NCBI GenBank assembly: GCA_965637545.1
Contig: OZ281500.1
Location: 23,684,001 to 23,748,000, forward strand
DNA: 64,000 nt
Direction of reading: 5' to 3'
DNA from: Phallusia mammillata
Lineage: Eukaryota
Shown: piece by piece, positions 1-56,524 of the stretch
How positions within the stretch are numbered: the first letter of the stretch is position 1
Layout of the letters: each line of letters begins with the position of its first letter
Translations under genes and position numbers: made by a program
The notes under the pieces: generated by a model
Databases searched by the model: none
The model's input: only the letters and a program-made list of their open reading frames with translations
Told to the model about the DNA's origin: nothing

Positions 1-3000
1 TATAGAATACATCATGCAGACGTTTTAACAATCGCTGTTGTCATCATCACTATATTGTTGCTGTTTATACTCTTTACCTATTTGTAAGCTCTTGTAGTCT
101 TTATTCTTTTACTACTCGAACACTTTTATTGTTATAAGATACGGAAGGTTTTGGATTCTTTTTAATGGAGTGTGGGAGTTTTCATCAGATAATTTTTTTT
201 TCAAATATCTTTTTTCTAAGCAATCTGTCTTACCCTTCAACTAGCCAGCCATCCTCCATAGTTAGATGAACATCCTCGATTCTGTCGTTGTAAGCATAGT
301 GGAAGCGCTTTGGGAGGTATTCGTACTTTAGTGCAGACTGAAACAAAAGGCCGATTGAGTTAAAACGCAGTAAAATAAAGCTTATTTAAAACCAGAAGTG
401 GTTGTTAACCTGTATGAACCCTATGGCAAACTGAACGAATGCACACAGATTAACAGTGCAAAGTAAAAAACTTGCCAAAGTATAAAGATTATGTAAAGTA
501 ACATGAGTAACTCACAAGCCAATGAGATTGGTCGTAGGTGCATCTGAGTTTATTTTGGACTTCCTCGGGGTCAAAAAGATGCCAGTTTGCGGGGTCTTTG
601 TCTTTTCCCACTCTCCCAAACGCCCCTCCTCTCACATATACGTCATCAGGATTCACCCCGTAGTCTTCAATGCTTGATTTACGATCGCACGAAAGTTGTG
701 CCATGCCTGAGTGAGTGCATTGGTAAGTTTACATATAGCGGAATTATTTCTTCAATGTGAAGTATTTCTTCAATGTTATAAAATAATTGATAAGAGTGTG
801 TAATATAGGTGTGTGATGTCATAAAAGGCTAAAGGCTGAGCACCGAGTATAAAGATAAACAAGCTAAGCATATGCACCTTGGGGCAATAAACCTGTGTAA
901 GTGCATTGGTAAGTTTAAATGAAAGAAAAATTAAAACTTTGCTAAAAAAACGAACAAGGAAGTTAAAACAATTTGTGCTGGGATTGATTAGTCGTATTCT
1001 TACAATGTAAAGACTTTCTAAATCATTCCAGTAAACAACAAACACATCACAAGTGCAACAAACCGAAAAATAAAAGTATTTTTTTTTTCAATGTTATAAA
1101 ATGTGATGAATAAGTCACCACAAATCAATATGTTTGTGTGCGATGTTATAAAAGGTTGAGCACCGAGTACGAAAGTGATATGCTAGGTCAAACATAACAT
1201 CTGCAGTTTATGGGCATCACTGAACAAGTCTATACATTTGCCAGAAACACTCTAGATGCCTTAATTTCAACAATTTAAACATATACATACCGTGATCTGC
1301 GAGGATGATAATATTAACGCAGTTATCAAGACCCCGGAATTTTAGGCCGTTCATGAGTATAGCAATCATATCATCTGCTTGCTTTAAAACTTGGTTGGTA
1401 TCGGGTGAATCTGGGCCATAATCATGACCGGCGTGGTCCACTATGTCCATGTACAAGGTGATGAACGACGGTCTAAAATTTAACAAGTTTGAATGAAAGG
1501 TTTTAAAGATTTTTTTTTGCATTTTCAGTATACAGCAGACAGTAGATAGATGGTTGATAATTGCAACTCATACTTGTGCTTGTAGGCCTACTATAACCTA
1601 CATGCAGTGGTGGGATTCAGCCAGTTCGCAACGGTTCTATAAAACCGTCTCACAAAATTATATTAGATCAACAAACCGGTTAGCATTAATGGTTACAGTC
1701 AATAGACTTTTTGTAACAGAACTGACTGAAAAACATGACTATTGTGATAGAACCGGTTGACAAAAAATTGGAATCCCACAACTGGATACATGGTTGTTAT
1801 TGAAAAATTGAAACTTTTCAATAACATTGTGCTTGTATGCGTACTAAAATACAAGAGGAAGTTTTAACTGTGTATCCAACATCCAACAAACAAAAAACTT
1901 TTGTCACCTGTCTTCTTTCGGCATATCCAGCCAATCAAAAGCCTGATACATTCTCTCCTCGTTGTCCACAGTGTCATCGAACTTATACCAATAATCGGGA
2001 TATCTTGTAATATTGACGTCAGAGCCAGGCCAGAAATAGGTGGCGCTCTTGAGGCCCTGGTTACTGGCGGTCACCCAAAACTAAAAAAAACATAGACATC
2101 GTATGAATCAGATATTTAAAACAGTTAAGATATCTATGTATAGGTTCTCTGGCAATTATGTTTTTGATCAAGTCATTTTTTAGGATTTAGCGAGCTCGTT
2201 CGAAGTTTCCCCTTGCGCAATTAATACGTCGATTCGACAAGTCATAGTTTACGAAAGGTGGAATTAGCAAACTGTGCATAAAACCACACAATGCAATCTT
2301 TCCCTGTGTTACGTCACAATGCCGTATTGTACTTACCGGTTCCCCTCCCCACCAGGCCGAGTTAAAACTTTCTGCACTCCCCAAACGAAATTCAGCCCCA
2401 AGTTCATGGTCGTACATCGTGTTGTCAATTATACCGTGGCTTTCTGGGTACAAACCCTGTAAAAAATATTGTTGTTGTAACTTTCCTAAATGTTTCACAA
2501 TATACATGTCAAGTATTTCTTTTGATACTTTGAAGTCCAAACTGGCGACTGTTTTAACCTTACAAGCAGTTCTACAAAATTAAATAGAACCATCTAGTAA
2601 TATATTGCGACCATAGATGCGATTATAACCAACGAGAAAGGTTTCAAGCACAAAAACTGAACTTAAGCAGTTATGTGATATTTGCTGTGACCATAAAATA
2701 AACACTAAACGACGAAAATATAAAACAGTTGTTTTTAAGTTTGTGCAGGACCCTAGCCATTTAAAACCAGCTAAAACAAACAAAGCGTTCGCAATCCAAT
2801 AATGGCCTATGATGAGTTAACAATCGGATTGTGCGTCACAAACGAACTGCAGGGGCAGGATGTTTGCATGCTCTTGTGCAAGCAACGTGTGGTCGAAATG
2901 GCAAAAGTCAAGCATTTAAGCAAACACTTACTGTAATGATGCTGTAATGATTTGGAAAGGTTTTCGTCGGATAAACTGATCTCATGTACGGGGCATGTAC

Positions 3001-6000
3001 ACCGCATGAAGCTGTTATAAATACAGATTACTAGTTATATGTACTGCATCAATGACAAAATAGTGGAAAATGTTTTAATTTTGGCAAGTAGCTTTAAATA
3101 CTTCGACATATAATTATGCCAAGAAAAATTGAAACCGACCTGCTAAATAGGTTACTGTAGCTGGGGCAAAAAATAAAAAAACAAGTAATAAAATATGGGG
3201 ATTTGTTAATTAGGACAAATATAGTTTCTAATTTGTTGAGTATTCAACTGTAGACAAATTATAGAAATAACGACAGTATGCGTGCTTCTTTTGAATCATG
3301 CAAACAGTTGGGTTATTATACGCAATCGCATTGTTCAAGTGTTTGCGACGAAACAATAAGCGATATTGCGTAACAGAAACTATTGTGCAATAGTTAATAT
3401 TTTTTCCGCAAGCAAACACTTTTATATTGTCCATAAGAAAAATCAAACAAATTTGTTTTAACTACTTGGCTGATGGTTTGATCTTTGATGTTAACAAAAG
3501 TGGTTTTAGTATAAACCTTATAGCTGAAAAATCTTCATATTGTTAACAATTTACCTAGTTTGTGGATATTCGGGGTAAATTCCCTGTATAGATACTCTGC
3601 TTTGAAGCCGTCTATTGAGAATAGAATAACAGGAGGGACATCAAAACTGTAAAACAAAATTATTTAAACCATTTCAGACTATTCTGGATAATTGCATGGC
3701 TACAAAACGCATATTCCGTTTAATTGCATGGAACTGTGCATTCCCAGACTATTATTTTATAAGAAAATAAAACGTGTTATTGTATATTCCGTTTTGTAAG
3801 CTTGAAATTGCAAATCATTACATTTATTTAAAGAAAGTTTAACCGAACGTCCCGGTTAAATGCCTATAAAAGCTTGGCAAATGGCTTTCTTATGCGAATA
3901 ACTCAATTTTTCAATACAATTTTTGTACCGAGAAAAAAACTATTTAAATTTCATACCCTGCCGGGCATTTCATTTCACTGGCTTGAGCACAATCTAGATC
4001 CAACCACGGAGGCATATCTACAAAAAAATTAATGTGCAGTAAAAATTTGTGATGTATGGTGAACATATTCTCTCGAATAAGACGTTTAAACATTAGTGTA
4101 TTGGCAGAAAAGCAATTGATTGCTGGTACAACTGGGGATTTACATTTCAAATTAATTTACCAGAACTACCTCACCCATTGGACCTAATAAAGGTATTTAA
4201 AAAATGCCATTATTTAAATTAATTCTGCCAAATATCCTGCTTTTTTGGAGTAACAGTTGGTTATAAAAAGAGTCATTTCCAAGTTAGCGTTTATACTTAG
4301 GCAAGTTTCCTCATAATCCGAACAACAGTTCCCAGCTTGAACACACGCATCCGTGCAGTCGCATCTTGTCCTTGTGACGTTGCATTGTCCCTTGCACAAA
4401 TATTTCTCCTCTAAAAACATTCAAATTGTTTGATAAACAGACACGACAGAATTTTCCAGAATTTAGACTAGGTTTTCTGGTCAAAGGGGCTAACAGCACC
4501 GCCATTTTTTCATAACACATCTTTTTTTGTAATTGCTACATAGACGTTAATTTGCGACAAAAAAAATTCTGTTGGGGTACTGTAGTATAATGGCTTGCAA
4601 GTTTTCCTACTATATATACCTTTTTATGTTAACAACGCTTATCAACACCTAAAGTCCAGTGCTCCGTTATATACACTTGAGTATTTTACTGATGTTTTAA
4701 TTGCATAACTTACCATTTATTTGACACAATTCTAATTACTTTGCAAATACCGTAGGCCTACCCCATATATTGCTTTCATAAATATAACGTTTTCATCAAC
4801 TAATATCTAAACTGATTAAGTTACGGAGTTTGTTATGTGTCAAAACTAGGCTAATAATTTCACACAAACAAACCCAGATCACACAAGTCGGCGTAATCGT
4901 CACAGCAGTTGTTGAACTTGGTGCATCCTGAATCACAATAACATGAAGCTTCTTCAGGTTTGCTGGTTTCATCACATCTGTTCTCACATGTTGCTGCATA
5001 ATAGCGAAATATTATTGAATTTAAATCAATAATAAATTAAGCACTAAAAATGAAGATAGAATTGACAAGAAAAATACATTAGATCTTAAACCAATACACC
5101 ACTTACTATTGTAAGTTCTGTATTGTTTGTTAGTTTTTGGAGAGACCCTTATCTAAAGCAGCGGTTCTCAAACTGGGGTCCGCGGTCCTTTGGGGGTCCG
5201 TGAGGCAATTTTGGGGACCGCGAATAGGTTGAAGTACTTCTATAATCTTATTTGGCGTCAGTTTGTGCCACTAAATAAGTTTATTAAAACAAAGTAGAAT
5301 TGAGAAACGACTGTCTCCATTGCTGAAGAATAGCCTTTATTGCATGACAACTTAGAAAAATGCAATTGTTCGCGCACAATAGCAATGTTTTTTTGTCGTG
5401 TCTGTGATGTCACAGCTGTCTTTGGATCATTGTTATGCGCAATTTGGCATGACTAGCTAAAATTGTGCTAATCAACTTTCGTTTTTCTAAAATATACATT
5501 CAGGTTGAAGGAACACGAGCCCTCGAAATAATGGCAAAGGGACCGTTTTAAAAAAATTATGAAAAGTTTGAGAACCAAGGTTTTATCCAAAACTGTATTA
5601 ATACACACGACCTAAAATGATACAATTTAATCTGATTTAAAAATAACTGCATGTACTTACATATAACAACGCACATTTGGGAGAAATCAGCGCAGCAGTT
5701 GTTGAAATCAGAACATTGCGAGTCGCAGTAACAGTTTCCGAAACCATCATGTTGTTCATTGCATCTTGCTAAACACGAATCTGTTGAAAAAACAATCGGA
5801 AATTCCACTGTTATTATTTGCCCCGGTGGCGTCACTATGTATTCTATGACGTCATATAGAGACCTGGTGTCAGACAGTTGGCATTGTAGTCGTCACAACA
5901 GTTGCCGTATTGCCTGCATTGGTCGTTGCACTGACAGTCGTCATTCGGGTTGTATGAAGCGTCGCATCTTCCTACGCAGGATAAGCCGGTTCCTGGGTCT

Positions 6001-8556
6001 GTTTCTGATGAGCACAAAGAATTTGGAATTTTGTGGAAAACATTGCATTAGTAGAATAAAAGAAAAGAAACAATTTTAGCAATAAACAACTAATAAAAGA
6101 AACATATTAGCACGTTTTCTAGCCTGGACCAAAATAGATGGTTTTTCATAGTTATTCGGCTCTTTATTTCGACAAATCATAGTTAAGAAATGATGAAGCG
6201 TACAATACATCTGTAAAAGACAATAAAATTTTAATCTTCTTTGTGCAAAAATTTTTTTGACAAAACACAGTATTAGAAATTTTTGAAACATTTTAGTCAA
6301 TGGCTGAAAGACATTTTCAGTTCACATTGAATAAGACTTCTTTTAGTTTTTAGGTTTTACCGTTGCCACATTGTTCGGTGTGATCGTCACAACAGTTATT
6401 TGATGACGAACAAGTTCCGCCACAGTAGCAACTTGCTCCAGGCGGGAGTGACGTTTCGTTGCAGCGATTCAGACACGTTTCTAGAAAAAGGTATTTAACA
6501 CGATGTTGTAAAACGGTATTTAGATATGATTTTAGTACTTTTTAATACTTAAACCAGGGGTGTGCAACCTTTGTTACTGTGGGGCCAAATACAGTTGCCA
6601 AAATTAGCTCGTGGGCCGCACATGTGTACAACACAAGGTGATTTTACTTCGTTGCTTACCAAATATGCTTAACTACAAGTAAAATTCGCATGTGATTCTA
6701 GTGCGCATTTATCTATTCAAAAATATATAATAGTTGGACGCGTTTGCCAGTACATTTGAATCCTAGCCTCTCTGTGGGCCGGACATCTTTAAACCAAGGG
6801 TCGCATTTGGCCCGCTAGCTGCAGGTTGCACACCCCTGGTTTAAACAGTTGAAAGTCTGAGTACAGCCTTTTATGACGGTGGTGCTTAAAAAATTCGTAA
6901 ATGTTTTGACTTCCCTGTAATATTTTCAAAATTTCAAATCGAAACAGGTAGCTCCCCACTGTTACGTATAACAATCGATTGGTTCTATAGACGCGATTAT
7001 AAACGAAGCAAAAGAATTAAACTTTAAAACCAAAAAAGGAAGTTCCATGACGTGGCCTAAACTAGTAAAGACCTAGCGAAACCATTTCATCAGACAAACT
7101 TAGGCCCTCCTCGGGATTTGAACCCGTGGCGTTTCGATGTTGGCACCACTAATAAACTTACGCGAGTCAATGCAGACTTGTTGATGATCTGTGCAACAGG
7201 TCGCGTTGTTACGGCAAGTGTCGTCACAATGACAAGGATTCGATTCGTTCCGTTTCGCCCAGCACCGGTTTAAACAGGAATCTAAATTTATGAGCAAGAG
7301 ACGCAACGTGATTGGACGAAAAAGTGGGCGTGTCTGAATTTTTCGCAAACACTTGTGTTTGAGAACATACAGTGCTGAAAGGCAATTAGCAACAATTGTT
7401 TCAATATTTTGTAAACGCCATTCCGACCATAATGACTTTTTAGGTGTCCTTGTTGTTTGAAAACTGAACATGTCGCTTCAGTTATATACATAAAAACTGT
7501 CAATCTCCTTTGCTAGTTAACTATTTGTGAAACTTCAACAAAATGAGTATCTTTTTGGATTTTCAAGGACTTTATTGTAAAATTAACCTCAATGATTTTT
7601 TTAAATACCAGTAGTACTTTAAAGATGTGTGTCCTTGTAGACAAAAACGGTTTGCTGCCTAAAGAACACTACTGTAAAGATTTTTATAAGCTGCAATCCT
7701 TACCAAAACTCGCACAAAGTGGAATATAATCATCACAGCAGTTTTCATAAATCCCACATTGAGCATTGCACTGGCAGAAATTGTTAGAGTCGTAACTTTC
7801 ATAACATCGATCTTGGCAGGACGGAGAGTCTGTAGCTTTTGTATCTAAATAAATACAGGCAGTTTTAGTTAATGTTGCTTTGAGTTAAATTAAAGGTTTT
7901 TGTTGACTTACCAAAGTTTAAAATCCGAACACCATTTGCAACAGCAAAGGAAGCAAGTAATACAAAAGCAATCTGTAAAATATATAGAAGTTTACCAATC
8001 GAAATAATATTTCTCATTAATGGATAAAAATGTATAAAAATGTAATCAGAAAAAAAACATTGAAAGTTGAAAAAAAGCTACCAGTCAATTCTAAGTGATA
8101 AAAAGTATTTTGCTTTTCGACATTTTGGTTTCCTATAGAATATATGAGTACTTAAAGCAAGTACTCACAACAAACGAGCACCGAAAATACCAAGAGTTTG
8201 AACGCCCGAACGATTTACTACTTTGGAATTTAGCGAATTTCGTGTGCAAACAACAACCGCATTCCAAATGAACAATAGGCTTGTTTGTGATTTAACACTA
8301 GTTACAACAATAGGTGAATGATAACAATTTAATTGTCAGTACTATAACAATGAAATACAAACAAAACAATCAAAATGGTCGCCAAACTTTACACAAAAAC
8401 TTTAAATTTTGTTTTAAGTTTGAAGATATCCTGTAACATGATATTTGGTGCCAAACGCAGTTTATTTACGTTCAAATAATAAACTAAACAAACGACCACA
8501 CGCATATCAAAAATCCAGTAAAACATAAAATTGGGACTTACCTTAGTGAGCAACAT
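1..8556 (-). CDS. ENPP-A: ectonucleotide pyrophosphatase/phosphodiesterase (ENPP1/3-like) with signal peptide and 7 SMB domains; 3' part lies beyond the window start
   Basis: Hand-spliced GT-AG exons: 8542-8556 (MLLTK); 7912-7972 ([20 protein letters not shown]); SMB exons 7704-7844, 7162-7281, 6361-6480, 5864-6004, 5661-5780, 4874-4993, 4297-4410; then 3957-4017, ~3556-3647 ([14 protein letters not shown]), ~2931-3010 ([15 protein letters not shown], catalytic Thr), ~2336-2455 ([16 protein letters not shown]), ~1908-2080 (FWPGSDV), ~1290-1473 (VDHAGH...LADHG), ~510-706, ~236-339 ([14 protein letters not shown]). These motifs are diagnostic of the NPP family. Confidence 0.93.
6555..6838. mobile_element. 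hAT-type MITE
   Basis: TIR CAGGGGTGTGCAACCT, TSD ACTTAAAC/GTTTAAAC (6/8). Confidence 0.75.
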
Positions 8557-10070
8557 AGCAGAACCTTTAGCAAACCAATTCCAAAACCTCCTTATTACAG
8601 CAGCAACTGACCTGTTTGTCTGGTAATGCAACCCAGTTAACGGGCGTTTTACGCTAATCATTAACTAGTGACGCAAACTAAGCAGTGTGTTTGTTGCAGG
8701 AACAAAAAGAAAAATGGCGATTTTTTGATTAAACAGTTGTGTCTTTTTGCGATTATTTAAAACAACGGTTCTTGAACGTCTTTTAAAACAAACTAGCCTA
8801 TACTTGAATGTACTCGTAAAGCTGGCTTGCTGACGCCAAAACAACATTAACATGAAACCCACCATACAAAAAATCTACAACACAAAAAGTTGAACTAAAA
8901 CTTTCAAGGTCTAGATCAGAAGTCTAACTGTGGAGTTGTTTTTGTTTTTAGTACGTAAATTCATGTCACTTTTGTAACTCCTGTTAACATATTAAATTTA
9001 ATTCGTGAAAAGAAACAAAGCTATAATTCTAAAGTCTCAATACGGGAGTAAATGGGGTTAATTTCTCGTCTATTTGGGTAATAAGTTTAAAATGGGGGTT
9101 GGTAACTTTTAAAGAATCGGACAATGTTGAAACAATAATGAATCTCTAAATAAAGTGACAACTTTTTATACCAATGGTGGCCCTGCACAAATTTAAAAAA
9201 CCGTTACAATACTTTTAAGGATGTAATCAATGTGTCAAAGCTTGAGATTGTAAGCTTGTAAATCGCAATGTAATTTGTACACAATGTAATTCAATCAACA
9301 GTCACAAATATCGCAAACACTTCAACAATAATACGTCGTTAGTGCCCGGGTATTTCCGTATCCAGCCTTCAATGGTAAATATTAACGCAAGCATTTCGAA
9401 CGAGAAAAAAGGTTTGTGGTTTTTCACAAACAATGCATTAAGACATGAATCAATGGTTATCGAACACTGTTGTTGTGACAAAACAATCGCGAGAAATTAT
9501 CGAAAGCGTGTAACAATGAACACTCGTGTAATGAACTTGCATAATGTAACAATTAACAAAACAAAACATGCTTTTCCTCTAATTTCGTCAACTTAGCTAG
9601 TTTTTAGTTGAAAAGTTTGAGATGTAAGATACGACAAGATATATAGTTGATTAAAAAATACCTGTGTAAATAAATGACATAATTGTTGTGTCACATAGTG
9701 GTAACAATGATCAACTAAATTGCACGAGCTGAGCGAGGACGTTTTTGGTGGGTCATTAAAGCAATAGTAATGACATAAAGGCAGTGGTGGGATTCAGTCG
9801 GTTCGCATCGGTTCTAAACCGTCTCACGAAATTTTATAAACCGGTTAGCATTACTGGTTACTGTCAATGGATTATTTGTAACAAAACCGGCTGAAAAACA
9901 TGGCTTTTGTGATAGAACCGGTTGACAAAAAAATTGAATTCCACCACTGCACAAAAGGGTTTTAAACAAACCAGTAGAATCTAAATTTCGGCAAACAATT
10001 TTAAACAAAGTAACCCAATTCTGGAAACAATCAAACTTTACAGGAACATAATTGTTAAGTGTAAAAGGCT

Positions 10071-23912: not shown

Positions 23913-25005
23913 CGCAATTTTCTGCCTTTACCTTACACTATAGAAGTTTTCGATAACTTTGTTGCAAGAAAACGGCTGCATTTGCCGGATGTCACGACTT
24001 GTAGCCCGTTTACACCAAACTGGTCCTCAGCAAAGAGCGTCGTTGCATGTGAAATCTTAAGGCTGCCTTTTTTCTTTTTGTTACGCGCCAAAACATGATT
24101 TCATGCAATAAGCTTCCAAATTGCCCGAGAATACGCTAATTGCACCACTTCCATTTTGGATGTTTGGTGCTCGACACGCGAATTTGTTAAAATGTGTAAT
24201 GACGAAGCGAAAATTGCCAAAATCAACGACCCGAGTAGGTTTTTAAAGAAACATTCCAAACTAATTGTTAAAAACAACTTATAAAAGTAAAAACTTAAAA
24301 ATAAGCAAGACTGATACCTAAAATGCAAATAGCCTTTACCACCCAGGCAAAAACTTAGCATTTTAACCAGTTTTGTAAACAAAACTTTCTAAAAGCTAAA
24401 CTATACATTGTCGTAAATATAAGAAGAACCCACTTTTTTAGTTTCCGTGTTTATACACCGCCAGCATCCATTACAATTTGGTCGAAAAACAACGCAACAA
24501 AGAAAATTGCACCGTACGCAGCCGTTCGCACAAACACAAAAAACATTTCACCGCATGAAAAGAACGACCACAAAATAACAGCGGCTTTTTGCAAATTTCC
24601 TACAAATTCTGAGACGTGGAAAAAATTGTTCATATAACTTATCGAGTTTTCAGTGGACTTCTCCCGCTAGGAGTCGTAGTGGCAACGGGAGTTCTCACTT
24701 AAATGGAGTTTGAGTTTAAGACCCAATCTAGTCGTTTGTTTTTTGTAACAAAAGGGACATTTGCAACTTTTTAGTTCACTAGCTGTCCAGACGTTTCGTT
24801 GTTGCATTTCCTAATTGCAATATAATACTTAAAATCACAAACTGCGTTATCGGGGACATTTTCCGTTTTTCCAATAAAAAAAACTAAACCCTGCAACCAA
24901 ACGCTGTGTTAAAACCGATTCCCGAAATAAAACGATAAAATGCCATCACGAGATCGCAAACTGACCAATCACAGAGCGCAGAGCTCGACCAATAGGAGCA
25001 GTGGA

Positions 25006-30440: not shown

Positions 30441-30457
30441 CCTTATATGGCAGGAAG
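30441..30457 (+). promoter_or_regulatory. CArG box (CCTTATATGG) with adjacent ETS core (CAGGAAG), ~1 kb upstream of the testin ATG
   Basis: Exact CC(A/T)6GG match in a locally GC-richer stretch between the divergent SRP68 and TES starts. Function is inferred. Confidence 0.45.
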
Positions 30458-43730: not shown

Positions 43731-46700
43731 CTAAAACCGATAAAACGTTGCCAGTAGGCATGCTAAGCTCATCAACACATTTTGTGGACTTGTTCTTGTG
43801 GCGGGGGAAGCACCTAAATCTTGCAGCCAATCGCTAGTGAATTGTGGGAGGAAAACTTTCCTCCGGATGGCGGCTCTTCTGGTGGTTTGAGATTCGCTCC
43901 GGGTCCAGAGTGGGAAGAAGTTGAGTCCGGCAACAAGCTCCACATCACGGATCCGAGCAACATGTTGAGTCAACGTCGTCGCGCCCCAACTTCGCACAGG
44001 TTCGTCAGTCTGTGTTGGAAACAAAATGTGCCAATAACGTTTCGTTAGGAATGTTTATGGTTTTAGTGTTTATGAGCATGCACACAAGCTCACTGAGGAC
44101 CACTGTGAGCAAAATTAAATATAAAAATTGATCTTTTCCCCCTCACCTTACGACACGGATATTCCTCAAAGTTTGGAATAATGAAACTCAAGACTTCCAC
44201 GTCATCGGGCGATGACGTACACTGCATAATTGGAGTTCCTACCTCAGCGCATCGCGTCATTACCAAGAAAAAGTGGGTGGGGATGGGCGTGGCTGTGATG
44301 TCACTCCCCAGAAATTGTCCTTGGCTGTCGAAAAAGTCGTTCTTTCAAAATATACGATAGAAAACTAAAGGAAAATTACCAAAAGCAATTCTTGTAAAAT
44401 ATGAAAAAGTAACGACAGTAAATGTAAAAAATACTTTTTCAAGTGTGAAGAAGTACAATTAATACGCAGAAGTGAAATAACATAGATAGCTGTTACCAAC
44501 GAGTAAATAAAACAAAGAACTTTTATCAAAGCAACAATCAATTGATTCTTGTTTATAAGTACATACGTCACAATGGTGTCGTTTGTGTCTGGAAGTCCGT
44601 CATAATCATAATCGAACACAGGTCCAGCGGTGACAGCCAAACCCCCAAAATCGTTCGCCCATCTTCCCATCTCACCAGCCATGAAACTCCACACTGCATT
44701 TAAGGTAACACGAAATTTACAAATCAGGCGTCGTTTGTGGGTTGCGAAAGTTTCGCAGTTACTTCCACTTTTATTACCAAGATCTTTGGACTTGGAAATA
44801 AAACGGAATAAAAATGTGCTCAGCTGTTTTCAATGTAACATCTCGTTGTGATGGTAACTAATTTACCGCATTGAATACCGAAATAAATAAAGTATATTTT
44901 GTGCAAAATTTAGTGCATTTGCAACGTTAAAATTTATGCATAGCAGCAGGGTTTTTTTTAAGGTTTGGTTTGGGTGACCGCTAAGTAGTTTTAAGAGACC
45001 GCAAGTGTTTCATTTAAATACCAAAAAATAGCCATATTTGCTTTTTGGGAAACCGCTGGAGAAATTCTTAACCGGTGGGAAATTTCCCACTAGTGGGAAA
45101 TTTAATGTTTTTAGAGGGAAATTATCTAAGTCAGGTAACTAAACTCGGGCCCGAGGGTCAAACCCGGCTTTGAATTATTCGTTGAAAGTTACTTAACTAA
45201 CATTTTTCCGCAAAAACATGTAAGATTAATTTCAGCAAGGCTTGCAAGACACATATAAATCCAAAGGCCGTTTGTTACATTACAGACAAGACTAAAAGTA
45301 TCAATGACTTTACTATTGTGCGCGAATAAAAGCCTTTCCTTTATTGATTGTGATGCAATAAATGACCAATGCAAGCAGAGCAGACTCTTCAGTATTCCAA
45401 AAAGTTTAATCTCTCACAGAAGCACTATTTACTAAATAAGATTGCAGTATACCTTTGGAGTTCCAGACCAAATCGCTTCACAAAATTATTTCATTAAAAG
45501 AATAATTTTTTGTCAACGTAGGGCACAAAACATCATTATAAAAATAACAGAGGGGGAAATTCGAAGTCGAAGTTGACTTTAGTGGGAAACCACACCAAAA
45601 AGGTTAAGAACCACTGGGTTAAACGAAAATAATCGCTCGTGAGAATAAATTCAACAGGTTCTCGAAACTTAATGATAAAACAAGCCAGCATTTCCACTTA
45701 CTCTCTGCGGTGGCAGGATACATTGGCACTGTGTTGGTTCGGATCAAAGCATCGTGCACCGCGTCTCCGTTCGATAATTCTGCGGTTTACAAAACATCTA
45801 TCTTTAAACATGCATTGTGATTTCACGGAGACAGGTATATAACGCAAGTGTCAGCATAATATCTGCACTAATTGAAATTTGAAACTACATAAGTGCAAGA
45901 AAAAATGCAAAAAGCAAAAGTATTGGTTTCAAACGTTAAAAGTCGTACACCAGGCCCACTGAAGGCGCCATACCGAATCAGCCTGTCGCCAAGTATTCAC
46001 CACCAAATGGCAAGGCGAAGGCTAGAAAAAGTTTTTTTCTGAATTTAGTTTTTACTTCAATGCAAGCCCAATAACGGAACATCTAGAGGTACACCTATTT
46101 TTACAAACACAATGCATCTCTGCTCCCACCTGGTGGATATAAGAAAGCTGATTTCACGGTGTCCTGGTCAGTGTAGGATGAACAGCCAGTTTGAAACGCC
46201 AACATACGATAATCCGAGCGGCTGCAACCAACAGGAGCTTCCATGTCCCGTTTCTGCAATAAACACACACAGAAAAAGTAAGCCGAGTGTTGAATTTTGT
46301 AATAACGAAACGAAACCACAAGGTTGCGTGTTCTAATCCCGCATCTTGAAAGGATTTCGAAACAAAACACACCCAAATGAGCGAATTTTTTTGATACATA
46401 ACAGCACGTTTTTCTATGTTATATTTCAAGCAAGTTCATACATCACAAAAATTTAATAAATAAACGACATTGTTTAAATGTATTTCAGCAGAGCTTTTTT
46501 CCCATAGTTTAGTCTTTAGTGCATCTATAGGTTTCATACAAGTCGGAAAGCACTGACTTAGACATAGAGAATTTCTTCTTACCACATCTTGTAGGGTGAA
46601 AGTGACGTAGACAGGTTGTTTCTTGTCTATGTTGTGTTCGTTTGTGAAATCTTTCTGACCCAGCAAGCAGTGGTGCTGCATAGGTTCAACATAAATTGTT

Positions 46701-49700
46701 GGACGACCGTATAATGAGTTTGCAGCATCGACAGCAGCCACTGTACACAGCAAAATATTCTGAGAGATTTTAAATGGATTTAAAGCAAGCTTTGTGCGGT
46801 CAACCACCACATGCATAGATGACGATTAAAAAACGACATTCCTGCAGTCAAAAAGGGGATTTTAAAGAGCTTTATACAGGTTAGGTTACCACAGCGTTTT
46901 CTATGTATGGCTTTGAAAACTTTTAGCCTGTATCCCCTACATCAGTGGTTCCCAACCTTTTTTTAACGCGATCCAAATACTCATCAAAATTTTGTTTAGT
47001 GGTTTCTCGCGACCCATGGACATGCTATTTTAGTTGTATCTTTGTCTGTAAATTTGGAAAGCTTGTTGAAAATTTCTAGGCAGGTTTAGCAAATCAATAG
47101 TCTTATAACGAACGAATAGTGTTGTTTTTTCGACCAAACATTTCCATTTAGCCCGAACTTGGAGCTAAATCGAATTATTATTGGCCAGACAACGCCCAAC
47201 TGTGAGCTAACACATCACTTTATGACGTCACAAACAGTTTTAACCATTATCACTACAAGTTGTGATAAAATTATTGTTGGGCAACAATTTAAAGCCTTGG
47301 GAAATATATACATGTAAAAAACACGCTACAAGGCGAAATCAAGCAGATGCTCTTATTCGCACTAAAACAGGCGGCCCAACAGAATGTTCAGGCGACCCAA
47401 CTTTGGGTCGCGACCCATAGGTTGGGAAACACTGCCCTACATAACAGCCTATTTCTTTGTACGACTTTGCACGCTTTAAACGGGTTAAAAAGTATCATAA
47501 GATATTCAGTGTTCTAGTATTGAAATTAAAAAATCAGAAAATCAAACCCACCTTCCTCCACAGTGACGGGCAACCGTTGGTTTGCTTCTAATTCGCTCAA
47601 ACCCTGAACAAAATAATTTGAAACATCACATAGCAAGTTTACAACGACGCACATTTAAAGGGGACAGATTTTTTCTAGTCGGTACTTCGTGAAATTCCTA
47701 ATCAGTTTTGGCACCCTAATCTGTATCTTGCGGATATTATTTGTTAAACCAATGATTCAAATTCCTTGCACCTATAGTTAAAATCTCCTGTTATTCAACA
47801 TCTTGCCAGACTTCACCAATAATTTAAGCTTTTTCCCAACCTGACAATAAGTGCATCCGAGTTTGTCAGTCGATGCGGGTGGTTCACTGTTCACTTCACA
47901 GACCGCGGCGTTCTGTCCATTAGGTGGCGCTGGTACGTCGCTCGGTTGCGCCATCACGTGATGAAGAGCACCTGGTGTCCCATTGTTTGGAGCCGGATCA
48001 AGAGAAAGAAGATCTTAAAAAGAGAAATGTCCTCAAAACCTGACACCACTAGCCGATACGGCCAATGTCTTGTCACCAACTGCATTAATGAGACCTTGCG
48101 GGTTGATTATGACAGTGTTTTTCAACCTTTTTTGAGCCACGGAACACTTTATACATTAAAATATGTTTGCGGAGCACCAAACGAAATTTTGATGCAATGA
48201 AACAACTATAGGGTCAGGGTCACTAAAACGCTAAATCGCACATCACGTAATCACTAAAACGGATGAAAACGCTCATATAGCGCTATTAAAGTCGGGGGAA
48301 GTTTTACGAAAAACGTATCATTGAAACTAGTATTGTACCTAAATACAATATTCGCCTAGCACTGACTGTTCCGTGATTCATCGTTTTCCGAGCAAGCAAT
48401 TATGCTGAACGTCAGAAAATTTGTTGAATCTCGTGTCGACTGAAACAGCGTTTAAATGTTATATTATTTTTAAAGATTACCCAAAGCTAAATTGCACCAA
48501 CGGTCAGCAATTTACCCGCGATTCAGCTATTTCATTATTAGACAACGAGTCTTAATATTACTCAACAATAAATGAAGCCAATCACTACAGAACATTCCAA
48601 TCGGGGATGGCGGATAATTATTTTCATAAAAGAAAACCTATTTCTGCCTATTGTATTAAACCAGTGATTTTCGACCGGTGTTTGATATAAAACACTATTT
48701 AAACCGTAGAAGTCTAAAACATTAGAATCTTATATTCAAACCAGCAAATTTCTCGCGGAACACCTGATGATCTTTCACGGAACACCGGTGTTCCGCGGAA
48801 CACCGGTTGAAAATCACTGGATTAAGGTGTACTGTCTGCAGCTTAGAAATAAATTTAATTGGATTTCCAAAAATTAACTGTATGCCACTGTATTTTTTAA
48901 CCTTTTTAGGTTACAGACTACTTCTGTTTTATCAATATCTGCATGGGAATAAAGATGTAAATTACTTAACAGTAATGGACCTCTCACCCCGGAGTATAGG
49001 CTATGTTATGATAATTGTGCTTTTAAATTTATCATTATTTTGTAATAAATATTTCATCAGTTTGATGTTTGGCAATTGTTTATACAACACCAATTGCTTG
49101 TCTTCACCACTATGTCACCGTAAATTACTTCAACAACTTGGAATTCGGTAACAAACATAGACCGATGAATTACCTGTGAGCAAATTGTAAACTTCGACGC
49201 TTTCGAAAGGTTCAGTTGTGTTGTATTCAGTCTTAAATCCGGGTCCGTGTGCAACGAACAGCGACTGAAACATTATTGAAAACAAAGATCTTTGTTGTAA
49301 ATAATAAACAATTCAAACCATATTTGTCGATACCATCAATGTGATTGCCCCAAAATCAAGTAGATACAATTGCGGTTTTAATTTAATACCAACCTTTATT
49401 AGGAAACTGTTATGCCATGTAAATAAAATCGGCATTTTGAGGCTGCAACCAGTTCCATTAAAATTGTCTTTTAAACAAATATGACGTAACAATGTCCGAT
49501 ATAAAGTGGCACGTGATAGGTTAAGCGAACAATTTAAGTTTGACAAACGAACAATACATTAAAAATTTAAATGCGCATTGGAAAAATTATGAAAAAAAAC
49601 ACGGAGAGGATTCAAAAAATGAAAAAAATTACATGGACAAAATAAACATTAAAAAGTACATAAAAGCAAAGTATATAAATTTTACAATAAAATACATTTA

Positions 49701-52700
49701 CGGCCAGATGCAAGCTTTCCACAAGTTGGATGTTTATTCACAAGTAAACTTGTTTAAACAGGCACGAAAACAAGGTTATAAATCGAACTGTGCAAGTTTA
49801 CTTTTAGACAATTATTATTTGAACTTGGTTTAATAATTAAACTTTTTGCTACACCTAAAAGTAATACAACTTATATTTGATCAACAATAAACTCACATGC
49901 ATACTTCTGAACTCATTGTCATAGCCATGCATTCCACCGTCACAAAAGTCCATTGTTCCTGTCTCTCTGGAAAGCAATTTAAGGTTTAACTTAGTGCTTA
50001 GATTTCTGTAACCTAACTTATAATTAAATTATATCCACAACGGCGGCGCTTGGTTGGGATAATGTTGTAAAAATACAGGGAAATTATTTCTTTTCAATCT
50101 TTTTATATTTAACAGGAATGTCAGCACTTTTAAATAACACCTTTACTAATCTTTGTAAGTTGCACAGTGTTATATACAGCTGTAGGCCTACAACTGTTAA
50201 AGACATACAGAAGCAATTTTGCTGCCAATGTTGTACAAGTTGTTGTCGATGCCTATTTCTAAAAACGTTTTGGGGTAAAGCATACAAGTCTTATTATGGA
50301 ACAAAATAAAAGTTTAGTTTTTATGATTATTGTCAGTGTTTACGGAACGTATTTGGGTACTATAGAATTAATAAATTTCGGGTCTGGTGTTAAACAGTGT
50401 TTCCAAAAATATTTCTCACCCGCCCACGAGCCAAGTGTCGTCCATCACAAGTTGAACTTGCTCAATTCGATCGTGATTCGCGTAGTGATAACGTTTTGGG
50501 AAATACTGACTCTTCTGGTAAGCCTGGAAATAACAAGATAATAAAATACAAACAAAATGCCCAAACTCACATAAAAACATCATTTACATATTTTGGTTGT
50601 AAAATTTAACCAGTTTAAACCTTTTAACAGCTAAAAGTTGAAAACAAAAAGCTAAGTAACTTGACAATTTTACGTAGTAGTATAAACTATCATCATTGGT
50701 GCAAAATGTCGGTAAAAATCTTCATTATATGCCATGCTTCGATTTAGTTTGCTGAGTCCCTGTCTCTAGTGTTTCCAGTGCAAAAACTGCTAAAACTATG
50801 GTTTACGAGTAGTTTTGCGAGCTTAACGAAATTCCACAGAGCATGCAATGCAAACAAATTCACATTGAACTAACAAAGTAATCAAACAGGTAAATAAAAC
50901 ACGCAGAAGGAAATAAAATGCTGATTAAACAAAAAGAAGTATGTTGGCCCACTCACCAGCCAGCGACTGTTTTCGTGGGTGCATTTCAGTTGGTCGACGA
51001 TCTTAGCTGGTTTGAATTCGTTCCACAAAGTTTCGTCGCGACTCTTCCCAACACGACCCAGAGCGCCTCCGTAAAAGTTCACCAGACTCATGTCGACTCC
51101 GTATTTGTCAATGTAGTTAAGGCGGTCGCAACTTTGAGGGGACATTCCTGGGTACGTTTAAACAAGCAAGGGTTTAATGTTAAAACTGGATTTCGTCACT
51201 TTATAATGCAAATCCAGAAAGTTAACAGGGTAGAACAATACATCTAAGTTTTCACTTAAAATTAAAACATATTACAAACCCTTGAAAACGCAGAATAGCT
51301 TAAAACAAAGCCTTGAAATTCAGTGCTTAGAACAATGGTTTCCAACCGGGTAGGGATTAAAAACCTAATGGGGTGGAATTTACTTTAATTTTTACATGTG
51401 GTTTGTAAACAGACACTTTAGCTCTGGGAATACAACCTGTGAAGTTGATAAAATACACAATTTTAAATGATCTTTGTATGGTTTGGCATCTACTATATGT
51501 AGTGTATTGGGGAGGAATATAAATGTTTTAAAGTGTTAAGGAAGGGATTCGTTATAAAAGGTTGGGAACCACTGGTTTTAAAATTTGCAAAGCTGAATTA
51601 CAACAAAAGCCAAGAGCAGTGGTTCTTAACCTTTTTGGTGAAGTTTCCCACTAAAGTCAACCACCAACTTCGAATTTCCCCCTTTGTTATTTTTATAATG
51701 ATGTTTTGTGCCCTACGTTAACAAAAAAAAATATTCTTTAATGAAATAATTTTGTGAAGCGATTTGGTCTGGAACTCCAAAGGTATATACTGCAATCTTA
51801 TTTAGTTTAAATTGTGCTTCTGTGAGAGATTAAGTTTTTGGAATTTTGAAGAGTCTCCTCTACTTGCAATAGTAATTTATTGCATCATAATCAACAAAGG
51901 AAAGGCTTTTATTCGCGCACAATAGCAAAGTCATTGATACTTTTAGTCTTGTCTGTGATGTAACAAACGACCTTTGGATTCATATGTGTCTTGTAAGCTA
52001 TGCTGAAATCTTACATCTTTTTGCGGAAAAATATTAGTAAAGTAACTTTCAACGATTAATTCAAAGCCAAGTTCGACCCTCGGGCCCGAGTTTGGTTACC
52101 TGACTTAGATAATTTCCCCCTGAAAACATTAAATTTCCCACTAGTGGGAAATTTCCCACCGGTTAAGAACCACTGGCCAAGAGGAACATGACTACAAATG
52201 CAAAAATATTGAAATCAACAGCTAGGTTGCGGACTCCAGGTTGAAGCTATAACTGAGGATAAAATTGAAACAAACTTACCATGGTCAGCAAGCAACACGA
52301 AATTGACGCAATTTTCAAGACCGCGCACTTTGAGTCCGTTCATCAACAAGCTGATGATGTCATCAACGGCTTGTAATTCGTTTGTGACGTCATCGGAGTC
52401 CGGTCCACCCACGTGACCTGCGTGGTCGAGATCGCTGACGTAGAGAGTGATCAAACTCGGTCTGTGGAGACGAAGTGTTTCGTGAAATATATAAAAGGGC
52501 GAAAGTCATTGGTTCGAATCCCATCTGGTAACATTGTATTTTTCGTATTTTAATAAACCGGTGGTTCTCAACCAGGAGTCATTTTCTTTATGTATGACAG
52601 AGTGTTGCGCATGACTGATTGTGGACTTGGTCACATGTCACAGTTTGGAGAATACAATGTCAACTCCATATTTGCAATGTCAAAATGCCGGTGGGACTAT

Positions 52701-55700
52701 ACAACTTATGCAAGAAACAAATATGTTTGACTTGATTTTTTTTTGCTGGATTAAACATCTAACCCAGGGGTTCTTAAGCCGGGGCGCACCCGCATTGTTC
52801 CCAGGGGGTGCGGGGATGCTTGTATAAAAATTTAATTACAATGGTTTTGTTATTTAAGCAATTACAGAAGGGGGTGCGAAAATTAGTTGGTGATTTGAAA
52901 GGGGTGGAAAAAGGTTAAGAACCACTGTCCATTGACAGGCAACGCAAGTGCAGCAGTGTTAAATTTAAACAATTAAAAGAACACGAAACAATAAAACAAG
53001 TGACGCAATAAACCTCAAGGAGAGTTTTTCCATAATTCGAAGCAAAAAAAGACAGATTCGCCCAATTTTTTTTAAATTATATCTCCCACCTTTCATCACT
53101 TGGCATGTCGAGCCATTCCAGGGCAGTGTAAATTCTCTCCTCATTAGGAACACTCCCATCGTATGTGTAATAATAATCCGGATATCGCGTAATGTTAACG
53201 TCACTTCCGGGCCAGAAATAAGTAGCTGATTTCTTGTTCTGGTTACTGACTGTCACCCAAATCTGAAAATAATACAATAAAAGCAAGGTTAGCAGTTCTG
53301 TTGACCTACAGTAGCCAAAAGTTGAGTTCCAAATCGTAGTACGTTGGACGTAGGAGGCTTTGCAAGGATCATGAAGTAAATGTCCCAAGCACTGGCATTG
53401 AATAACTATGCACAAAACTTCATGGTACGGAAGGAGTTGAACACAAGCCTAAAATTTGCGGACACATACTGAAAAAAAAATCAGATTTTCATTGATGTTT
53501 CAAGAGGCTGTCAGCAATGCGCTCCAATACAACACTATAAACCAATGGTTCTCAAACTCGGGTTTCGGGGCCGCATGCGGCTCCCAACTACTTATTTTGC
53601 GGCTCGCACCAGACCTCAGAAAACCACCAAATATTGCTATTTTAGCTTTCAAAGTAATCTTCTTTAGTGATTTTCTAAAGGTTTCGTTTTTTCTGCGGCT
53701 AGGGAGCCTTACTTAAAACACACTTAAAAAATACCATTTGACTTTGATTTCAACTTAAACTCTCACCGGTTCGCCTTCCCACCAGAAAGGATGAAAAGTG
53801 TTCGGAGACCCGAGATAGAATTCCTCCTTGTGTTGGTGGTCGAACATCGAATTCTCGATCACTCCATGGCTTTCAGCGTAAAGACCCTGAACAGCGACAC
53901 CAAGTGATATTGTGTTTGTAAAAATGTATTATTTATTATTATCTTCAAACTGGGAGGTACAGAAATCTATCTTTTTGAAAGTCGTCTGGATTCCCGTTTA
54001 AACCCTATAAAGTCGTGCAGTTAACAAGCTCTATGGTTGAATGCACAAAGCTCGCTAGGAAACCCGCTTTAGGCGTGCCAAATCGTGCATGTAACAAGCG
54101 CTGTCGTTGACTGCACGAAACTCGTTAGGAAAATCGCTTCAAGAGTGCAATATTGTGCAAGCAACACGCGCTAACATTGACAGCTCAAAGCTCGTTAAAA
54201 AAATCCGATTTCAGTGTACTAATCAACAGCAATTATTGCAGCGCAATCGCATTATCACAAAGTTAGAATGTTTTTGTGGTGTTTTTACAAGTCTTATACA
54301 AAAATATGTTCCCAAGCATGAAAACGTACCGTAGCGATTGTGTAATGGCTGGGAAAGGTGATGGTCGGATAAACCGCTCTCATATACGAAGCGTGGACGC
54401 CACATGAAGCTGTGGAAAGGTTTGACAAACATTAGTTGACAACCAAATGCAAAATACAACATGAATATGTATTGTGTCAAGTACTAATTGGGTGATTATA
54501 ACTAGGTGGTTCAAAATATTACATGGGGTAGTTTCCTATACAATATAAGTTTCAAAGTTTAAACTTGACGTGATAAAATGATGTAAGCAAGCAAGTTCAT
54601 TTAGTTGCATCACAAGCAACAAAACAGACAAAAAGTAGGAAAAAAACAAATGAAATAGTTGTAAATTGACGTCATATAAGGCTAGATCCACACACACGCT
54701 CGCGCGCCAGCGCATAGTTGGTTTGTTTCTTTATAGCCAGCGTAAAACGCCGGCGCGCGAGCTTAAGAAACAAACCAACTATGCGCTGGCGCGCGAGCGT
54801 GTGTGTGGATCTAGCCTAAAATTTTCAGTGCTTTTTTAACAAATGTTTAGAAGTACCTAGTTTAAAAACATTCGGTGTTTTTTCTCTGTATAAATATTCT
54901 GCCTGAAATCCGTCGATGGAAAACAGAATTACTGGTGGTTCTGGAAATCTGAAACAAAAATGAAAATGCTGGGTTGGCGCAAGATAATTTAATTAAACCA
55001 TTGAAAAATGCAGGTCAAATCTTATTTACCCGTTCACACCAGGTGTATATAAAGGTTCTCAATCGGGCTTTTAGATACCTATTTTGGAAGTAGTATGGTA
55101 TAAAACACCATCTCTCGAATTAGGCAAAACGCTTGTGCAAAAATATTAAGACGAATATGGAATTCTGGTTTTAATTAATTCACCAATTAATTCGAAACAT
55201 ACCCGCTTGGGCAGCCTAGTTGCTGTTGAGTTGGACATTCATCATCAATCCAAGCTGTCCCTCCTTTAATGTAAAAATTACGAGGTTGGTAAGTGAAATT
55301 TATGAGCGCAGTATAATGGTTAAATAGTAGAACACATCAATTGTCATTAAGAGCCGCTTTACATTGTTGCATGAGTACGAATGGGTTTTGGCATTTGGTT
55401 TTGGAAACGTTAGGTATTTTTAGTCAAATAAGCTGACTTGCTGACTTACATATTGCTGTTAAGTCTGAAAATCGAACTGAACCCATCAAATGCCTAAATT
55501 AGGCCATAAACTGAAAATTATCAGTGGGTTCAATATAGATATGTTGGGGTTGTACGCAGTGGTGGGGTTCAGCCGGTTCGCACCGGTTTTATAGAACCGT
55601 CTCACGAAATTTTATGAGATCAGCAAACCGTTAGCATTACTGGTTACTGTTAATGGACTTTTGGTAACAGAACCGGCTGAAAAATATGACTTTTGTGATA

Positions 55701-56524
55701 GAACTGGCTGACAAAAAAATTGAATACCACCACTGGTTGTACGGCTAAACGCAACAAATCAATACAAACCCTGTATGTATGCAAATTCCTGCAAAGAAAA
55801 TGAAATTACAACGAAAATATATCGAAGAGAAAATCTGTGCCCAAGTCCAGTCTTGACTTACACCCGATTTCCTGACAAAATTACAAGGCTGTTTCAGGGC
55901 AGATCCTTGATTTTCATAAGCTGTTAATTCGGTCGCTAATTTGTTCAGTTACCTTGGCATGAAGTCAGATAATCGGAGCAGCAGTTTTTGGCGGCAACGC
56001 ACACGTTTGTGCAATCACACCTGGCCCTTGTTACGTCACACTGTCCATTGCACAAATAATCTGAAATCGATAACAACAGAAATAATACGCGTTATTATGT
56101 TGGTTTTGACAAGTCGCATATTAAGGCTAAGATGTGTTAATTGCCCGAAAACGAAAAACATTTGCTAAAAGGTTTGATGCCATTTCTTACTGTGAGTACA
56201 GAAATCTTAACGAAAATTGTCGCATATTTTCAAACGTCTAATCTTGACCGGTTGCTAAAAACCTTGTGCCAAAATTTTTACCAACTACGAATTATATTTT
56301 AATCAAAAACATATCTATCAGAGTACTTGTGTATATAGAATACATTATGCAGACGTTTCAACAATCACTGTTGCCATCATCAGTGCAGACTGCAGGTGAT
56401 AATATAGCTTTTACAAGTATTGTTAAAAACACCTTTATCAGAAAATACCTGAATTCTGGGCCAAACCACAGTAAAACAGACTAAGCAAAGTCAAACAAAG
56501 CAGTGAATAGGTTCCACTTAACAT
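43731..56524 (-). CDS. ENPP-C: complete ENPP1/3-like gene with signal peptide, a single SMB domain, PDE, nuclease-like domain and C-terminal GPI-like tail
   Basis: Exons 56449-56524 ([25 protein letters not shown]); SMB 55953-56060; ~55202-55263; ~54856-54947 (SIDGF); ~54331-54410 (PTITFPSH); ~53768-53887; ~53090-53263; ~52280-52463 (LDHAGH, ADHG); ~50955-51150; ~50420-50522; ~49899-49968 (GMHGYDN); ~49175-49265; ~47841-48013 (APNNGT); ~47553-47604; ~46581-46742 (YGRP); ~46129-46255; ~45701-45778; ~44569-44695 (DYDYDGLPD); ~44146-44340 (PTHFF); 43731-~44015 ([10 protein letters not shown]...stop). Intron positions mirror ENPP-A and ENPP-B. The 44569/44340 junction phase is not fully resolved. 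Confidence 0.92.
46943..47434. mobile_element. hAT (Buster/Charlie-like) MITE
   Basis: TIR CAGTGGTTCCCAACCT / AGGTTGGGAAACACTG, perfect TSD CCCTACAT. Confidence 0.85.
48662..48819. mobile_element. Short hAT-like MITE
   Basis: ~20-bp inverted ends CAGTGATTTTC(G)ACCGGTGTT; TSD degenerate. Confidence 0.6.
51617..52175. mobile_element. Non-autonomous hAT element; a second, inverted and truncated copy lies at ~45064-45616
   Basis: TIR CAGTGGTTCTTAACC, perfect TSD GCCAAGAG. The interior is shared with 45064-45616 and partly with 5159-5580. It contains a decayed frame (..QTRLKVS..IDCDAI..) resembling the hAT C-terminal dimerisation region; that resemblance is an inference. Confidence 0.8.
54680..54816. 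mobile_element. PIF/Harbinger-type MITE
   Basis: Perfect 52-bp TIRs starting GGCTAGATCC, flanked by a TAA/TAA 3-bp TSD. Confidence 0.8.
55557..55735. mobile_element. hAT-type MITE family 1 (CAGTGGTGGGATTCA termini); further copies at 1605-1784, 9782-9950, 19164-19312 (inverted) and 22814-22993
   Basis: Related ~150-180 bp copies with ~15-bp TIRs. The TSD is perfect here (GTTGTACG) and 7/8 at 22814 (GGTACATT/GGTATATT). Confidence 0.85.

Follow-up and report, generated by a model that had tools for sequence, protein, structure and literature searches.

In the vertebrate enzymes ENPP1 and ENPP3, a group that includes snake venom phosphodiesterase, somatomedin-B (SMB) domains, a linker, a phosphodiesterase (PDE) domain and a nuclease-like domain follow one another in this order. 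The proteins are held in the membrane by a type II N-terminal transmembrane anchor, carry exactly two SMBs, and possess a threonine nucleophile, a two-zinc site, an EF-hand-like calcium site and an insertion loop. Autotaxin (ENPP2) has the same SMB-PDE-nuclease order and likewise two SMBs; it is secreted by way of an N-terminal signal peptide and is not a type II protein, and it is without the insertion loop, which opens its lipid pocket. ENPP1-3 are medically important for their parts in mineralisation, in purinergic and cyclic GMP-AMP signalling and in lysophosphatidic acid production, and the role of their two SMBs is understood only in part. How is this architecture built in an ascidian? 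We analysed a 64-kb stretch of the Phallusia mammillata genome (contig OZ281500.1, positions 23,684,001 to 23,748,000; hereafter the window), which is AT-rich, with a G+C content of about 37%, and free of N runs. It holds three genes, here called A, B and C, that are very probably tandem paralogues of the ENPP1/3-type ecto-nucleotide pyrophosphatases/phosphodiesterases, with SMB arrays that grew by exon duplication. The domain order, the nucleophile, the metal sites and the insertion loop recur in this locus, and the SMBs number seven, four and one instead of exactly two.

A cysteine-pattern scan of all six frames placed SMB-like motifs on the minus strand only, where seven lie between 4.3 and 7.8 kb, four between 21.6 and 22.7 kb and a single one at 56.0 kb. 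When the open minus-strand segments were compared with one another by all-against-all BLASTP, three paralogous exon series emerged, one behind each SMB group. Once spliced into models, the exons that follow the SMBs have the same lengths in A, B and C (61-92-80-120-173-182-191-104 nt, then 70-91 in B and C), and the three genes therefore share their intron positions. The last SMB exon ends in phase 1 in each gene, matching the phase-1 start of the linker exon, and the splice sites are AG/GT throughout the models, with the donor of the first SMB exon of B, a GC, as the sole exception. The first-pass annotation had described three co-oriented ENPP1/3-type genes with common intron positions, and the exon lengths of the spliced models bear this out. 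The members of this tandem family are as follows.

234-8613, minus strand: gene A (seven SMBs), with a 5′ exon, a signal-peptide exon, seven SMB exons, a linker exon and seven PDE exons; 17 exons are visible, and the gene runs off the window start, with its 3′ end outside.
10071-23813, minus strand: gene B (four SMBs), with 23 coding exons and 22 intact introns, 978 aa; signal peptide, SMBs of types I-I-I-IV, PDE domain, nuclease-like domain and hydrophobic C-terminal tail.
43731-56524, minus strand: gene C (one SMB), with 20 coding exons, 838 aa and its start codon at 56524; signal peptide, SMB of type IV, PDE domain, nuclease-like domain and hydrophobic C-terminal tail.

The predicted protein order is thus a signal peptide, an SMB array, a short cysteine-containing linker, the PDE domain, the nuclease-like domain and, at the end, a Ser/Thr-rich stretch with a hydrophobic tail; the last three of these parts are visible in B and C and lie outside the window for A.

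By motif scan and Pfam together, the window contains 12 SMB exons, seven in A, four in B and one in C. The open reading frames of all 12 score between 25.2 and 45.3 bits, above the gathering score of Pfam PF01033 (23.1 bits), and their eight cysteines align without exception. Each SMB corresponds to one exon, which in every case is of phase 1-1 and of a length divisible by three (in nt, A 141/120/120/141/120/120/114; B 144/147/144/117; C 108). The counts of seven, four and one, which had first been read from the letters alone, are confirmed by this profile search. Two further motif matches, at 24473-24538 (upstream of B) and 7929-7970, were rejected as SMBs because they were out of frame or context. 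The SMB exons, with the types that we derive below, are listed here.

7704-7844, minus strand: A SMB1, type I, 141 nt, Pfam 39.1 bits, RNA joint.
7162-7281, minus strand: A SMB2, assigned to type II by position, its sequence being non-diagnostic, 120 nt, Pfam 35.4 bits, RNA joint.
6361-6480, minus strand: A SMB3, type III, 120 nt, Pfam 30.9 bits, RNA joint.
5864-6004, minus strand: A SMB4, type I, 141 nt, Pfam 42.8 bits, RNA joints in runs X1 and X2.
5661-5780, minus strand: A SMB5, type II, 120 nt, Pfam 35.3 bits, RNA joints in runs X1 and X2.
4874-4993, minus strand: A SMB6, type III, 120 nt, Pfam 41.3 bits, RNA joints.
4297-4410, minus strand: A SMB7, type IV, adjoining the PDE domain, 114 nt, Pfam 30.9 bits, RNA joints; 70% identical to B4 and C1.
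22589-22732, minus strand: B SMB1, Pfam 45.3 bits, GC donor.
22278-22424, minus strand: B SMB2, Pfam 45.2 bits.
21947-22090, minus strand: B SMB3, Pfam 44.7 bits.
21607-21723, minus strand: B SMB4, Pfam 26.9 bits.
55953-56060, minus strand: C SMB, single, type IV, 108 nt, Pfam 25.2 bits.

For gene A, reads were examined over window positions 2300-8200. Run X1 yielded a 1404-nt spliced contig on the minus strand in which the seven SMB exons, the linker exon and three PDE exons are joined (blocks 7704-7844, 7162-7281, 6361-6480, 5864-6004, 5661-5780, 4874-4993, 4297-4410, 3957-4017, 3555-3646, 2931-3011 and 2337-2455); the contig spans 8613 to 2337 overall and runs on into the next PDE exon. All of its introns are GT..AG on the gene strand, none of its joints occurs in the DNA run X3, and run X2, from a second study, supports three sub-chains of the same splicing. 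The objection that the SMB exons might belong to a separate gene, which had been foreseen as the main way in which a multi-SMB gene A could be refuted, therefore falls for this gene. RNA thus settles the continuity from SMBs to PDE domain in A, and the N-terminal exons of B and C, as modelled, rest on spliced models. At its loose end, the X1 contig has 70 nt whose match covers 8544-8573 and continues past it, within a 5′ exon at 8542-8613. A start at ATG 8017, reading through the acceptor at 7973, was ruled out because the contig splices 7972 to this upstream exon, which contains ATG 8556. The remaining exons of gene A are these.

8542-8556, minus strand: beginning of the reading frame, five codons (MLLTK) from the start codon ATG at 8556-8554 onward, joined by splicing to 7972; donor GTAAGT at 8541.
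7912-7972, minus strand: exon 2, with the hydrophobic core of the signal peptide; ends in phase 1.
3957-4017, minus strand: linker exon, 61 nt, W..C..CP.G, phase 1 to 2, RNA joints.
3555-3646, 2932-3011, 2337-2456, 1908-2080, 1291-1472, 516-706 and 234-337, minus strand: PDE exons, matching Pfam PF01663 and, in the Protein Data Bank (PDB), ENPP3 and ENPP1.

Separately from the exons, two intronic stretches of gene A (5058-5648 and 6437-6830) have a word depth of 10^5 in the DNA run, against about 280 for single-copy sequence, and consist of repeats with a very high copy number. The DNA contigs break at them, and the RNA-like runs contain them too.

An exhaustive HMMER search with one catalytic exon of gene A retrieved a deposited protein of 714 aa, CAB3242642.1, named ‘venom phosphodiesterase 2-like’ and assigned to Phallusia mammillata. 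The spliced model of gene B, over its 16 3′ exons (19528 to 10074), is identical to it at 713 of 714 residues, and the deposited sequence thus backs the 3′ two thirds of B as well as the origin of the window from this species. Queried with CAB3242642.1, a large protein collection yielded no further ENPP protein of 393-1250 aa from Phallusia, so that A, C and the N-terminus of B have no independent protein record there.

Is the enzyme behind these arrays of the ENPP1/3 type? The PDE exons of A, B and C match PF01663 (275.7 bits for CAB3242642.1, that is, gene B), and the best PDB matches of a catalytic exon of A are ENPP3, venom phosphodiesterase and ENPP1, with ENPP2 weaker. The equivalents of human ENPP3 D167, T205, D325, H329, D372, H373 and H483, which are the threonine nucleophile and six zinc ligands, are all kept in B and C; gene A keeps every catalytic residue that lies in the window, the H483 equivalent falling past the window start. 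In an alignment of A, B, C, human ENPP3 and the ascidian homologues, N226 and the phenylalanine neighbouring the nucleophile are conserved. The EF-hand-like calcium site (human ENPP3 752-760, of DxDxDGxxD type) is kept in B, as D-D-N-D, and in C. Alignment with human ENPP3 showed no autotaxin-type deletion in the insertion-loop region; unlike autotaxin, the tunicate proteins keep this loop, and they score lower against ENPP2 than against ENPP3 and ENPP1. For the nuclease-like domain of B, the C-terminal 335 residues of CAB3242642.1 (380-714) match venom phosphodiesterase and ENPP3 at about 540-825 (E 4e-37 to 1e-28). The first-pass annotation had named three profiles as a check: Somatomedin_B and Phosphodiest matched, and Endonuclease_NS (PF01223) found no match in the C-terminal exons or in CAB3242642.1, the nuclease-like domain being shown instead by the PDB sequence matches. 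The assignment to the ENPP1/3 type, with ENPP3, venom phosphodiesterase and ENPP1 as the closest solved relatives, was upheld, as was the view that SMB number is the main difference between the genes and that the enzyme itself is conserved, given the catalytic residues kept in the alignment.

The ends of the proteins differ from those of ENPP1 and ENPP3. As read from the sequence, A, B and C begin with a short hydrophobic segment resembling a signal peptide, which is followed directly by an SMB, and an N-terminal type II anchor of the ENPP1 and ENPP3 kind was not recognised in this reading. The C-termini of B (10071-10200) and C (43731-43830) consist of a polar stretch and then 15-17 hydrophobic residues with nothing beyond; in B, the tail reads NMSTQLKS followed by 17 residues. 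This pattern, which resembles a glycosylphosphatidylinositol (GPI) signal, is found in C and in most ascidian homologues as well, and a signal-peptide-like start together with a hydrophobic end recurs in the homologues from Ciona, Clavelina, Styela and the JGI set. The tail may, although this is not proven, represent a GPI signal in place of the type II anchor of ENPP1/3. If a GPI anchor holds the proteins at their C-terminus, the SMB array forms their distal, free end. The earlier idea of a surface enzyme would then call for a changed topology, with a predicted signal peptide and a C-terminal hydrophobic tail where ENPP1/3 have their type II anchor. In having an N-terminal signal peptide and no type II anchor, the Phallusia proteins would resemble autotaxin.

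How widespread are multi-SMB forms? We built a hidden Markov model from the 12 SMBs of the window and ran it on 339 ENPP relatives that had been fetched. All of the retrieved vertebrate relatives have two SMBs, in agreement with the number that the first-pass annotation gives for vertebrates. More than two were found in seven of the 339, and in the tunicate clade only: three proteins of Styela clava with six, Ciona intestinalis XP_002123994.1 with four, a Clavelina lepadiformis protein with four, and two JGI proteins with five and four, both of which the tree places within the tunicate clade. A Pfam recount gave six SMB stretches in Styela clava XP_039265727.1 and four in Ciona intestinalis XP_002123994.1. 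Ascidians also have 1-SMB forms, and Clavelina a 2-SMB form too. No SMBs were present in the sampled ENPPs of amphioxus, cnidarian, holothurian, nemertean, spider and priapulid origin, and PF01033 was absent from the precomputed Pfam lists of mollusc and annelid matches, the sampling being small in both cases. Within this sampling, the fusion of SMBs to a PDE domain is confined to tunicates and vertebrates; SMB number ranges from one to seven across tunicates, and the seven of gene A are the highest count observed.

Tandem arrangement recurs as well. In Ciona, three ENPP genes share one orientation; in Clavelina, a 1-SMB gene has a 2-SMB gene immediately upstream of it; and Styela clava OZ123525.1 carries two tandem 6-SMB ENPP genes, of 1064 and 1041 aa. 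The ascidian proteins predicted as ‘venom phosphodiesterase-like’ (Styela clava XP_039265727.1 and XP_077976206.1 with six SMBs, Ciona intestinalis XP_002123994.1 with four, and Clavelina lepadiformis forms with four, two and one) therefore share with the Phallusia genes their clade, their tandem order and their architecture, in which a signal peptide precedes an SMB array ending in type IV, a PDE domain, a nuclease-like domain and a hydrophobic tail. They differ in carrying one to six SMBs: among the proteins retrieved, the 7-SMB form and the I-I-I-IV array were found only at the Phallusia locus.

A PDE-domain phylogeny, which had been suggested against ENPP1-7, was computed from the DGF motif onward, with ENPP1 and ENPP2 outside the tree. 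The tunicate proteins form one clade (SH-aLRT, a Shimodaira-Hasegawa-like approximate likelihood ratio test, 100) beside a vertebrate ENPP3 clade (100), while the tree gives no clear order for its deeper forks. In this tree, the tunicate proteins are a clade of their own and probably not one-to-one orthologues of vertebrate ENPP3. Support of 99 joins C to the 1-SMB proteins from Ciona and Clavelina, and the nearest protein to A is the one with four SMBs from Clavelina (74% identity). The Styela 1-SMB and 6-SMB proteins group together (support 97); SMB number has therefore changed more than once, and the grouping suggests either an independent change of SMB number or gene conversion. A lineage-specific family had been proposed: the tunicate clade supports the proposal, and the family is not peculiar to the Phallusia locus, because Ciona, Clavelina and Styela share it. 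Whether such proteins had already been described in the clade has a divided answer. Automatic predictions exist in RefSeq and ENA, and a full-text literature search, outside which most subscription journals lie, found no paper on multi-SMB tunicate ENPPs, an absence that is accordingly unproven; one ascidian paper names ENPP2/ENPP3, merely as differentially expressed genes. The multi-SMB ENPP is a tunicate-wide variant, and its novelty lies in the lack of a describing paper among those found and in seven as the highest count.

By what route did the arrays grow? The last SMB (A7, B4, C1 and Ciona SMB4) is of one type, type IV, 67-73% identical among these proteins, and aligns with vertebrate SMB2. 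A1 and A4 are 58% identical, and both resemble SMB1 of Ciona and Clavelina (58-69%); A3 and A6 are 59% identical, and both resemble Ciona SMB3 (57%); A5 resembles Ciona SMB2 (53%). The array of gene A thus looks like I-II-III-I-II-III-IV, in which a three-exon block would have been duplicated before the conserved type IV. BLASTN found no intron similarity between the two three-exon blocks of A, so that the presumed block duplication is old, and its basis is protein identities and exon lengths alone. In gene B, SMBs 1 to 3 are all of type I, with 67-83% identity at the protein level, and the tandem units of exon plus intron show 76-78% DNA identity (BLASTN). Judged from these identities, the I-I-I-IV array of B points to a type I exon that was triplicated in tandem, together with its intron, in the recent past; Tandem Repeats Finder reported no tandem array over the SMB exons of B, the copies being too diverged. 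C, by its place in the tree, is a member of an older 1-SMB orthologue group.

Several observations might be explained otherwise. The SMB exons could form a separate SMB-only gene upstream of an SMB-poor ENPP, with seven, four and one an artefact of joining. An annotation of just this kind exists in Ciona intestinalis GCA_018327825.2, where the middle ENPP gene (L002:8317-16941) is given as a product of 173 aa with SMBs only and, directly downstream, a PDE product of 802 aa. The deposited Phallusia B protein, CAB3242642.1, starts at an internal methionine in the catalytic domain (19475-19528), and signal peptide, all four SMBs, linker and first PDE exon are missing from it. However, RefSeq XP_002123994.1 (993 aa) spans both Ciona models collinearly, and the two-gene annotation of this orthologue is probably an annotation split. 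In Phallusia, one contig of gene A runs from the signal-peptide exons through seven SMBs into the PDE exons, the phases of the last SMB and the linker fit in all three genes, and neither a stop codon nor a polyadenylation-type break lies between the parts; we therefore regard a separate SMB gene as highly improbable. It is also conceivable that the genomic count is a maximum only, and that alternative splicing varies the number, the phase 1-1 SMB exons serving as cassettes. All 12 could indeed be skipped in frame, but this symmetry is usual for exon-shuffled extracellular modules and needs no splicing role, and the transcript contigs from two studies include every exon that they span, a weak argument in that contigs drop rare variants. 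We consider such variation doubtful.

Gene B invites a further alternative, namely that it is a relaxed or decaying duplicate in which the type I exons are partly unused debris and the enzyme is losing or changing its function. B is the most diverged of the three genes, no other tunicate protein has a terminal branch as long as its own (0.85-0.95), it bears substitutions by the active site (ESSGIVGN for ESHGIIDN, and LDSAGH), and its SMB1 exon has the non-canonical GC donor G|GCATGT (22587-22589), where both sister copies have GT; given this donor, mature B may carry three SMBs. Nevertheless, its 978-codon frame is fully open across 22 intact introns, a transcript-derived protein exists for it, its nucleophile is retained along with N226 and the seven metal ligands, its four SMB exons keep their eight cysteines and pass Pfam, and GC-AG introns are a known minor class, so that decay appears quite unlikely to us. 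These peculiarities of B, together with the internal start of its deposited protein, weigh against our interpretation of the locus, and the following points are to be set on the same side. Runs X1 and X2 were taken as RNA by guess, spliced contigs being hardly anything else; the RNA evidence is confined to gene A, and the first and SMB exons of B and C come from sequence models. The C-terminal half of A, with its last zinc ligand, nuclease-like domain and tail, lies beyond the window. The best identities of A2 are 36-44%, and its type II rests on position and exon length. Finally, the tree includes neither ENPP1, which a motif filter removed, nor ENPP2. With these points counted, we still hold with considerable confidence that A, B and C are tandem ENPP1/3-type paralogues whose arrays grew by exon duplication.

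Between B and C, the tandem family is interrupted by two genes, as the first-pass annotation had stated and as their domain matches verify.

25009-29362, minus strand: SRP68 (Pfam PF16969, E 6e-43 and 5e-13).
31626-41861, plus strand: Testin (TES), a PET/LIM gene (three LIM matches; best solved match Testin 2xqn, E 3e-17).

On the promoter side of C, an ankyrin-repeat gene lies at 59588-61632 on the plus strand, and ARAGORN found no tRNA in the 64-kb window. An element of about 185 bp with terminal inverted repeats (CAGTGGTGGGATTCA ... TGAATCCCACCACTG) is present in four copies, about 80% alike and on the minus strand (22780-23010, 9755-9985, 1590-1820 and 55540-55770), distributed over introns of all three genes and the spacer between A and B. 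It looks like a miniature inverted-repeat transposable element.

If tandem ENPP1/3-type paralogues with duplicated SMB exons are indeed what the locus encodes, the proteins would be secreted via their signal peptides, would then be held at the cell surface by a C-terminal GPI anchor, and would hydrolyse extracellular nucleotides as ENPP1/3 do. The SMB array would be a free distal arm, as opposed to the membrane-proximal stalk of ENPP1/3, and the number of SMBs might set the reach of this arm or its valency for a putative ligand. Purinergic or cyclic-dinucleotide control, matrix targeting and recognition may be proposed as roles. More speculatively, the tunicate array might be a fast-evolving distal arm of a GPI-anchored enzyme, its length (one to seven or more) adjusted through the duplication and loss of exons and maybe through cassette splicing, so as to direct nucleotide hydrolysis to different extracellular partners, for instance components of the tunic or matrix, integrin-like receptors or foreign surfaces, with vertebrates having frozen a two-module remnant of a once variable array as a membrane-proximal stalk; we think this scheme unlikely and offer it as a conjecture.

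For the annotation of ascidian genomes, the locus indicates that ENPP genes have been truncated or split, in that the Phallusia protein CAB3242642.1 is without SMBs and one Ciona annotation divides the array from the enzyme. The locus is also an example of domain-array growth in two ways, by block duplication and by tandem duplication of a single exon, with phase 1-1 exons throughout and RNA support for gene A. In the closest invertebrate relatives of the vertebrates, the same enzyme thus occurs with one to seven SMBs and with a predicted attachment at the opposite end, which makes these proteins a natural experiment on the role of the SMB domains.

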